This document shows, piece after piece, positions 16,057-16,403 of a DNA stretch of 64,000 nt. Position 1 is the first letter of the stretch. Every line of letters begins with the position of its first letter. The stretch is from Diadema antillarum (Eukaryota). The stretch covers positions 930,001 through 994,000 of the forward strand of contig NW_027271552.1 of the NCBI RefSeq assembly GCF_040938485.1, in the 5' to 3' direction. The notes under the pieces were generated by a model that saw nothing but the letters and a program-made list of their open reading frames with translations, was not told where the DNA came from and made no database searches. Both the position numbers and the translations under genes were made by a program.

Positions 16057-16403
16057 TTACATAACGCTGCAAGATCTTTCATCTCTTGGTTTTGGGGGTT
16101 CTGGATTTGGGTCTGGTTTTGTGTTTTTTGCAGACTTTTTGACTGGTTTGGGTTCCTCGATAATGATTTCTTGGTTCTTTAACTCAAGATTGTAGGCATT
16201 CTGATCACAAGTCCTCAAAATCGTCCAAAGAAACTTCAGCAGCTGAATGTCTTTATCGATGTCCTCCTCGTGATTATCCTCCGTGTAATTTGCCAACAAG
16301 AGAACTCTGTTTTTGTTGTCGACGATGTGATGTACACTCTGGAGCACCGCGTTGGAGTCTGGGTATTCGTCCCCATGGGTTATGACGAGTAGCGGTGAAG
16401 TCA
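16057..16403 (-). CDS. Gene A exon 10: G4-like LLVITHGD, IFI44-type C-terminal helix, K/P-rich tail, CaaX (RSCSVM*)
   Basis: ctacag acceptor. LLANYTEDNHEEDIDKDIQLLKFLWTILRTCD matches the IFI44 pattern ISNY...D..KD.LIL..L..ML...D. Ends CSVM-stop. Confidence 0.9.

Follow-up and report, generated by a model that had tools for sequence, protein, structure and literature searches.

CaaX prenylation normally recruits soluble proteins to membranes, and Ras-type proteins carry a second membrane signal that is either polybasic or a palmitoyl group. In several GIMAPs, a hydrophobic anchor at the C-terminus keeps the protein on membranes. The tetrapeptide Cys-Ser-Val-Met (CSVM) forms the C-terminus of Rheb and is a validated farnesyltransferase signal (PMC7255682), and hGBP1 is also farnesylated (PMC2903825). 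Prenylation of proteins that already span the membrane is rare, as the first-pass annotation of the present sequence had stated, and precedents are provided by the prostacyclin receptor (C-terminal CSLC; PMC2760523) and CLN3 (CQLS; PMC6900386), both membrane-spanning with a cytosolic C-terminal CaaX box. In both proteins, the lipid forms an extra membrane-attached loop; in the prostacyclin receptor it is required for effector coupling (PMC2760523), and in CLN3 the prenyl cysteine influences sorting efficiency and not membrane attachment (PMC6900386). These proteins have seven and six transmembrane helices, respectively, and their last helix leads to the lipid without an intervening enzymatic domain in the cytosol, whereas the sea urchin receptors described here have a G domain of about 230 residues between one transmembrane helix and a predicted lipid.

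The whole stretch of DNA analysed (the window) comprises 64,000 nucleotides of the Diadema antillarum genome, with a eukaryotic composition (31-41% G+C) and split genes. It contains the paralogous genes A and B on the minus strand, and judging from their sequences these probably encode farnesylated, doubly anchored receptor GTPases of an echinoid-restricted type I family. The C-terminal ends were read directly from the minus-strand frames: gene A ends in ...PRDERSCSVM followed by the stop codon TAA at 16057-16059, and gene B ends in ...KDDSWCSVM followed by TAA at 41655-41657, in agreement with the RSCSVM and SWCSVM ends first reported. Translation from 16120 to 16057 gives ...PEPPKPRDERSCSVM and then the TAA, this range holding the stop codon of gene A, its CaaX codons and 17 further codons from the end of the tail; the gene B site, translated likewise on the minus strand, gives ...SKSKDDSWCSVM before its stop. 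The two ends close long open stretches (16060-16458 and 41658-42113, respectively). Polyadenylation hexamers are present downstream of both stops and are uninformative because the surrounding DNA is AT-rich. Both genes show the farnesyltransferase substrate pattern (Cys at -4, an aliphatic a2 residue and Met as X, then the stop), and the earlier reading of CSVM as a farnesyltransferase-type CaaX box holds, the identical tetrapeptide being farnesylated in Rheb (PMC7255682). The two boxes are encoded as follows.

16060-16071, minus strand: gene A CaaX box Cys-Ser-Val-Met, codons TGC AGC GTT ATG, with only synonymous variation among paralogues
41658-41669, minus strand: gene B CaaX box Cys-Ser-Val-Met, codons TGC AGT GTA ATG

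Gene A was modelled with the protein of its other-haplotype copy (P0027, annotated complete from signal peptide through CSVM) as a guide. The splice model has 10 exons and 574 aa, is open, and has only GT-AG introns; its order is signal peptide, IgV, IgC and transmembrane helix, followed by a short juxtamembrane exon, five exons encoding the G domain, and the tail that ends in CSVM.

28847-28919, minus strand: exon 1, start codon and signal peptide (MDRSKDLILLLIATACVSCGPVAK), donor AAG/GTAAGC (splice model, hydropathy)
25956-26267, minus strand: exon 2, IgV (Pfam V-set, E 2.4e-13)
24081-24416, minus strand: exon 3, second Ig domain, C-type (Pfam C2-set_2, E 7.6e-4)
23466-23594, minus strand: exon 4, transmembrane helix (IALGIGLTLLFVVLITVLFFATG) (hydropathy peak 2.85; splice model)
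22828-22875, minus strand: exon 5, cytosolic juxtamembrane segment LSRIPGWKKPLIDPR (splice model)
21896-22057, minus strand: exon 6, P-loop GQMSAGKS (splice model)
19600-19761, minus strand: exon 7, G domain with DNRG (G3 motif) (splice model)
18893-18980, minus strand: exon 8, G domain, GCRSM...ECHAAVLVYHKT (splice model)
17880-17947, minus strand: exon 9, G domain (splice model)
16057-16403, minus strand: exon 10, last coding exon with the stop included, acceptor CTACAG, phase 1
16072-16197, minus strand: flexible tail of about 42 residues (...IIIEEPKPVKK...PRDERS), from the last G-domain helix to the CaaX Cys

A phase-2 donor (AA/GT) after exon 7 was dropped once homologues revealed an additional 88-nt exon, and the canonical GTAAGT donor of exon 7 is usable because this exon is included. 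Besides a THGD (G4-like) motif, exon 10 encodes the C-terminal helix together with the tail and CaaX box, and a homologous exon is found in the RefSeq models P0027 and P0025. For the second Ig domain, Pfam C1-set gives E 3.4e-5 in the allelic model P0027. A run of N (20896-21035, 140 bases) lies in an intron of gene A.

The splice model of gene B is identical at every residue to the RefSeq protein P0025 (538 aa). Apart from its signal-peptide exon and its last coding exon, listed first below, the remaining coding exons together span 42775-55024 on the minus strand, as annotated. Last-exon use in both genes is based on computational RefSeq models together with splice-site and frame logic.

About 66018-66110 in window numbering: gene B signal-peptide exon, about 2 kb past the window end
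41655-41995, minus strand: gene B last coding exon with the stop included (model translation equal to P0025)
55024-54778, minus strand: gene B IgV exon, from the annotated Met
53759-53424, minus strand: gene B IgC exon
52062-51919, minus strand: gene B transmembrane exon
50177-50112, minus strand: gene B juxtamembrane exon, 66 nt
48767-48606, minus strand: gene B P-loop exon
46213-46049, minus strand: gene B coding exon
45100-45013, minus strand: gene B coding exon
42842-42775, minus strand: gene B coding exon

A run of N (49899-50100, 202 bases) lies in a gene B intron and abuts the exon at 50177-50112. The intron between the exons ending at 45013 and starting at 42842 holds LINE-type retroelement ORFs, reverse-transcriptase-like, at window 43259-44412 on the minus strand. 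Between genes A and B there is a tandem repeat (window 33523-34015) with a unit of 157 bp, 3.2 copies and 84% matches.

The proposal of a type I membrane topology for A and B, with the G domain in the cytosol, was borne out by a signal peptide, an Ig ectodomain and one transmembrane hydropathy peak in each. Pfam detected V-set and C-type Ig domains in the ectodomain, and the hydropathy profile has one signal-like peak and one transmembrane peak; a signal peptide followed by a single transmembrane helix would, in silico, leave the tail and its CaaX box in the cytosol. The AF2 model of the gene B cytosolic part (mean pLDDT 78.6) consists of a Rossmann-like G domain with an N-terminal helix, a long C-terminal helix and a tail that is disordered before the CaaX box (pLDDT <50). 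Because the tail is disordered in this model, the CaaX box should be accessible.

The G domain carries GQMSAGKS and DNRG, with THGD or THRD at the G4 position. Pfam AIG1 (PF04548) matched it at 21.3 bits against a gathering score of 27 (E 1.8e-4, profile positions 2-197 of 212), there was no Ras Pfam match to the domain, and the GBP family was not among the Pfam matches. A PDB sequence search with the cytosolic domain returned no match, and the PDB fold search gave many G-domain families about equally (Z 11-13; EngB, Era, GIMAP4, septin and Toc33); these fold matches are generic and single out no specific family. Among the Atlas predicted models, clusters of IFI44, IFI44-like and 'AIG1-type G domain' proteins matched with TM-scores of 0.69-0.76 over 235-257 residues (by query, 0.69 over 235 residues for clusters named 'Interferon-induced protein 44', and 0.71-0.76 for look-alikes from molluscs and chordates). 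In its predicted shape the G domain is IFI44-like, a likeness between predicted models only. No significant sequence link to IFI44 was found in the profile search of 1.84 billion proteins, which returned echinoid-type relatives only.

IFI44 and IFI44L are the best structural match among predicted models and have in common with the urchin receptors a P-loop and DxxG, a probably immune-related role and expanded families. The IFI44 clusters of the Atlas have a TLD domain N-terminal to the G domain, whereas the urchin receptors have Ig-TM; Pfam gave no match to a TLD(c) domain at this position, which is occupied by Ig-Ig-TM instead. Vertebrate IFI44 is cytosolic and is not known to have a CaaX box. 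The likeness to GIMAP/AIG1 proteins consists of the sub-threshold AIG1 match over the whole G domain and the presence of GIMAP2/4/7 and Toc33/34 among the fold matches. GIMAPs are anchored by a tail helix, whereas the urchin receptors have a predicted lipid, an N-terminal transmembrane helix and an ectodomain, and the role of the GIMAP C-terminal anchor could here fall to the farnesyl group. With Rheb and other farnesylated members of the Ras superfamily, the receptors have in common the CSVM tetrapeptide (Rheb), the order of G domain, flexible linker and CaaX box, and the predicted farnesyltransferase/RCE1/ICMT route; the urchin G domain, however, is not Ras-like, and the protein is an integral type I protein with an Ig ectodomain and no polybasic or palmitoyl signal. 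The comparison with GBP-type immune GTPases that had been drawn survives as an analogy only: GBP1/2/5 are immune GTPases with a C-terminal CaaX box, but the shape of the urchin G domain is predicted to be IFI44-like or AIG1-like and not GBP-like, and GBPs, being large dynamin-like GTPases that are soluble and contain a long helical domain, differ from the receptors in architecture and size.

By alignment, the tails of the two genes differ in length and composition (A, ...EEPKPVKKSAKNTKPDPNPEPPKPRDER; B, ...EKPKSKRSPSPPRPARVEESKSKDDSW). Their description as divergent and K/P-rich fits A and B and fails for three CSVM paralogues on contig C61, whose tails are E/S-rich or very short. A basic patch had been expected upstream as the second membrane signal and is absent, the net charge of the 10 residues before the Cys being 0 in A and -2 in B. 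The residues directly before the Cys are acidic or Trp, unlike the basic context of classical Ras-type anchors, and no second Cys lies near the CaaX Cys in the tails of A and B. The transmembrane helix is the obvious second anchor in place of a basic patch.

Within D. antillarum, the tails of A and B diverge with a pN of 0.57 and a dN/dS of about 0.85, and their CaaX codons show two synonymous and zero non-synonymous differences; at the A-B tail rate, zero replacements in about 10 non-synonymous sites has a P of ~2e-4. Among the CSVM copies, the tail, which evolves neutrally, has a dN/dS of about 0.65-1, with indels, versus 0.2-0.4 for the G-domain core. The five distinct CSVM copies have 0 replacements in the four codons, with synonymous variation at Ser (AGC/AGT) and Val (GTT/GTC/GTA). 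On this codon evidence, the CaaX box is under purifying selection and not a product of chance.

The last exon matches at least 80 loci in the D. antillarum genome. Among the best 30 of these, 7 end in CSVM, namely A, B, their two copies on contig C693 and three genes on contig C61, and the 23 without the box end about 25-45 residues earlier than the CSVM loci. C693 is the other haplotype of the window contig (C664), and the last exon of its B copy is identical. The prenyltransferase and ICMT genes likewise occur in identical pairs on different contigs: PF00432 prenyltransferase-beta repeats were found at three loci in each haplotype, and ICMT was identified by PF04140. As 23 of these 30 paralogous last exons and some camarodont members are without the box, the lipid would be dispensable for the basic function of the family, and the box would modulate that function without defining the family. 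The last exon of the gene A copy on C693 has a dS of 0.106 and differs at 11% of residues (...DEKWCSVM vs ...DERSCSVM), and the allelic divergence between the neighbouring genes A and B is very uneven (L002/L004, C693:1645818-1646165 and 1618149-1618484). One of the C61 CSVM paralogues (L031+L034, C61:3235300-3255250) is interrupted by an in-frame stop within the IgV exon (...AIFYD*DITI...), which may mark a pseudogene or reflect a polymorphism; its CaaX box is intact.

Among 1.84 billion representative proteins, a profile built on the last exons found 23 relatives; those with names belong to D. antillarum, D. setosum or Lytechinus variegatus, each annotated as 'uncharacterized protein'. A CxxM end was found in four further echinoid species and one ENA animal assembly. 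The D. setosum paralogues (P0026, P0028) end in DDRWCSVM and SSWCTVI, the camarodont homologues (L. variegatus, L. pictus and Strongylocentrotus purpuratus) in KKKCKIM, HKCKIM, KRKCEIM, KSKCEIM and ESICEIM, and contigs of the ENA assembly in RCSLM, RCSVM and GCALM. Conservation across orthologues had been proposed as a check on the box, and CxxM is indeed kept in Diadema and camarodonts, the Cys nonetheless being absent from most of the best paralogous exons, as counted above. The distant species have in common a Cys at -4, an aliphatic -2 residue and a terminal Met, while the remaining residues of the box and those before it vary freely; what is conserved is the CaaX logic alone, which is the pattern predicted by farnesyltransferase recognition.

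The camarodont proteins of 302-305 aa have no Ig domain and begin with two N-terminal hydrophobic segments (signal-like and transmembrane), with an N-glycosylation sequon between them, and end in CxIM. An N-side membrane anchor and a C-side CaaX box thus co-occur in Diadema and in full-length camarodont proteins, and this co-occurrence fits the earlier suggestion of a GTPase whose two ends are both clamped to the membrane. The G-domain tree places the CaaX-bearing Diadema genes in a single clade (88/90), next to an expanded clade without the box (100/98), and the camarodonts, mostly CaaX-bearing, fall outside both Diadema clades. The CaaX box is very probably ancestral to the family, in combination with a transmembrane helix, and the simplest history would have it lost later in the expanded Diadema branch; this order of events is inferred from a tree with a midpoint root.

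In the doubly anchored reading of A and B, the protein would be inserted co-translationally into the ER membrane with its C-terminal tail left in the cytosol, and cytosolic farnesyltransferase would then modify the CaaX Cys. An RCE1-type protease would cut off SVM, ICMT would methylate the new C-terminus, and the farnesyl group would enter the cytosolic leaflet of the membrane that bears the transmembrane helix. The G domain would be suspended between two anchors, N-terminally the helix and C-terminally the lipid, and so be held near the bilayer and oriented on it, with the helix taking the place of the second signal, polybasic or palmitoyl, that Ras-type proteins use. The lipid modification, this clamp geometry and effects on G-domain dimerisation, sorting or signalling are what we infer from the sequences.

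A RefSeq model of D. setosum bears on how constant the lipid would be. The orthologue of gene B in that species (P0001) is modelled without a CaaX box, but the genomic frame (L049) reads ...NESSCSVM-stop; in the model, splicing out of the last exon from an internal GT, 12 codons ahead of the stop, leads to a mini-exon of 30 nt that lies 2.4 kb downstream. A loss of the CaaX box in this gene was rejected, since the genome still encodes SSCSVM and the model takes a different terminal mini-exon. Transcripts with a different last exon, which had been named as a finding that would count against prenylation, are represented by this one model, yet the genomic frame there still ends in CSVM-stop. The mini-exon exchanges the CaaX end for ...IHGTVEVKK. 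Its sequence also occurs in five copies in a repeated element downstream of gene B (window 35108-38666), and the copies that bear it are as follows.

35108-35151: mini-exon-bearing repeat copy
36235-36360: mini-exon-bearing repeat copy
36539-36631: mini-exon-bearing repeat copy
37583-37710: mini-exon-bearing repeat copy
38575-38666: mini-exon-bearing repeat copy

The mini-exon may give rise to CaaX-less isoforms, or may be an exonisation or annotation artefact. Such a splicing switch belongs to an alternative that we regard as possible though unlikely, in which the farnesyl group is a regulated or sorting signal and not a static clamp, exposed or hidden with the nucleotide state of the G domain or recognised by a prenyl-binding partner, and would steer trafficking or coupling. 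The exit of the D. setosum model through an internal donor, together with the mini-exon sequence downstream of gene B, speaks for this alternative, and the acidic/Trp residues conserved ahead of the Cys could form a surface for recognition. By analogy with the prostacyclin receptor, whose lipid is required for effector coupling (PMC2760523), and with CLN3, whose prenyl Cys acts on sorting efficiency (PMC6900386), the lipid may affect coupling or sorting rather than attachment. However, the location of the mini-exon in a repeated element with five copies in the window points to a possible artefact, and a regulated signal still needs prenylation and overlaps with the double-anchor reading.

A more specific form, in which these proteins are lipid-switch receptor GTPases with the farnesylated tail as a nucleotide- or ligand-controlled second anchor, seems to us rather unlikely. 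If it were true, a ligand bound outside the cell would alter how the G domains dimerise or how the farnesyl group inserts inside it, the response would be tuned by splicing or by loss of the CaaX box from genes, and this would be a principle of immune signalling undescribed in any animal.

That the terminal Cys-x-x-Met is kept as a docking or degradation motif, or for a redox-active or palmitoylated Cys, on a protein that is not farnesylated is doubtful in our view. Conservation in Diadema does exceed the box: the conserved stretch is D-D/E-x-W/S-CSVM, with KDDSWCSVM identical in four genes, and conservation longer than the CaaX box could indicate a binding motif instead. The acidic upstream context, which differs from that of classical polybasic CaaX proteins, and the many family members without the box are also in keeping with such a motif. 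Nevertheless, distant species keep the CaaX logic only (CSVM, CSLM, CALM, CKIM and CEIM), in a pattern of variation that fits a transferase-recognition rule and not a docking motif, and the identical tetrapeptide is farnesylated in Rheb.

The first-pass annotation had also raised a soluble, TM-less fragment (from cleavage, an internal promoter or splicing) that would act as a GBP-like prenylated GTPase relocating to target membranes; this is highly improbable and found no support. Three camarodont models (P0017, P0034 and P0036; 253-269 aa) do keep CxIM without N-terminal hydrophobic segments, but the start Met of P0017 lies at the end of the transmembrane-helix exon (L045 9923-10015). In Diadema, every phase-compatible exon connects Ig-TM with the G domain, annotated models are complete, and no candidate for an internal first exon was seen. 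A free fragment would also be anchored only weakly by a farnesyl group that has neither a basic patch nor a palmitoyl Cys to assist it. P0017 (XP_041471415.1, 254 aa, Lytechinus variegatus, GCA_018143015.1 CM031022.1), the Lytechinus TM-less model checked, is probably N-terminally truncated because its start Met ends the exon encoding the transmembrane helix, and it was rejected as evidence of a soluble isoform.

A literature search on the receptor family and on the S. purpuratus and Lytechinus LOC identifiers found no paper. CaaX prenylation is known, as are prenylated membrane proteins and immune GTPases anchored by a lipid, and the family itself is undescribed in the papers searched. The receptor family is probably immune, and the box gives a handle on this uncharacterised and expanded group of receptor GTPases. 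Here a CaaX box is kept under selection in Diadema on proteins that already span the membrane, and it accompanies a membrane anchor in the distantly related camarodonts as well. The family is therefore a natural test of what a second lipid anchor does on a membrane-tethered enzyme, be it orientation, clustering or sorting, with CaaX-bearing and CaaX-less paralogues in one genome as natural controls.

Across the at least 80 loci of the Ig-TM-G-domain family (e.g., L008-L030 and L037-L044), most end soon after the LWxxLxxCD helix, without the tail and the CaaX box, and some of the CaaX-less loci (L037, L041) also have IgV/IgC and transmembrane exons. One family member (P0005, 864 aa) has three IgV and three IgC domains and a G domain without the P-loop part.
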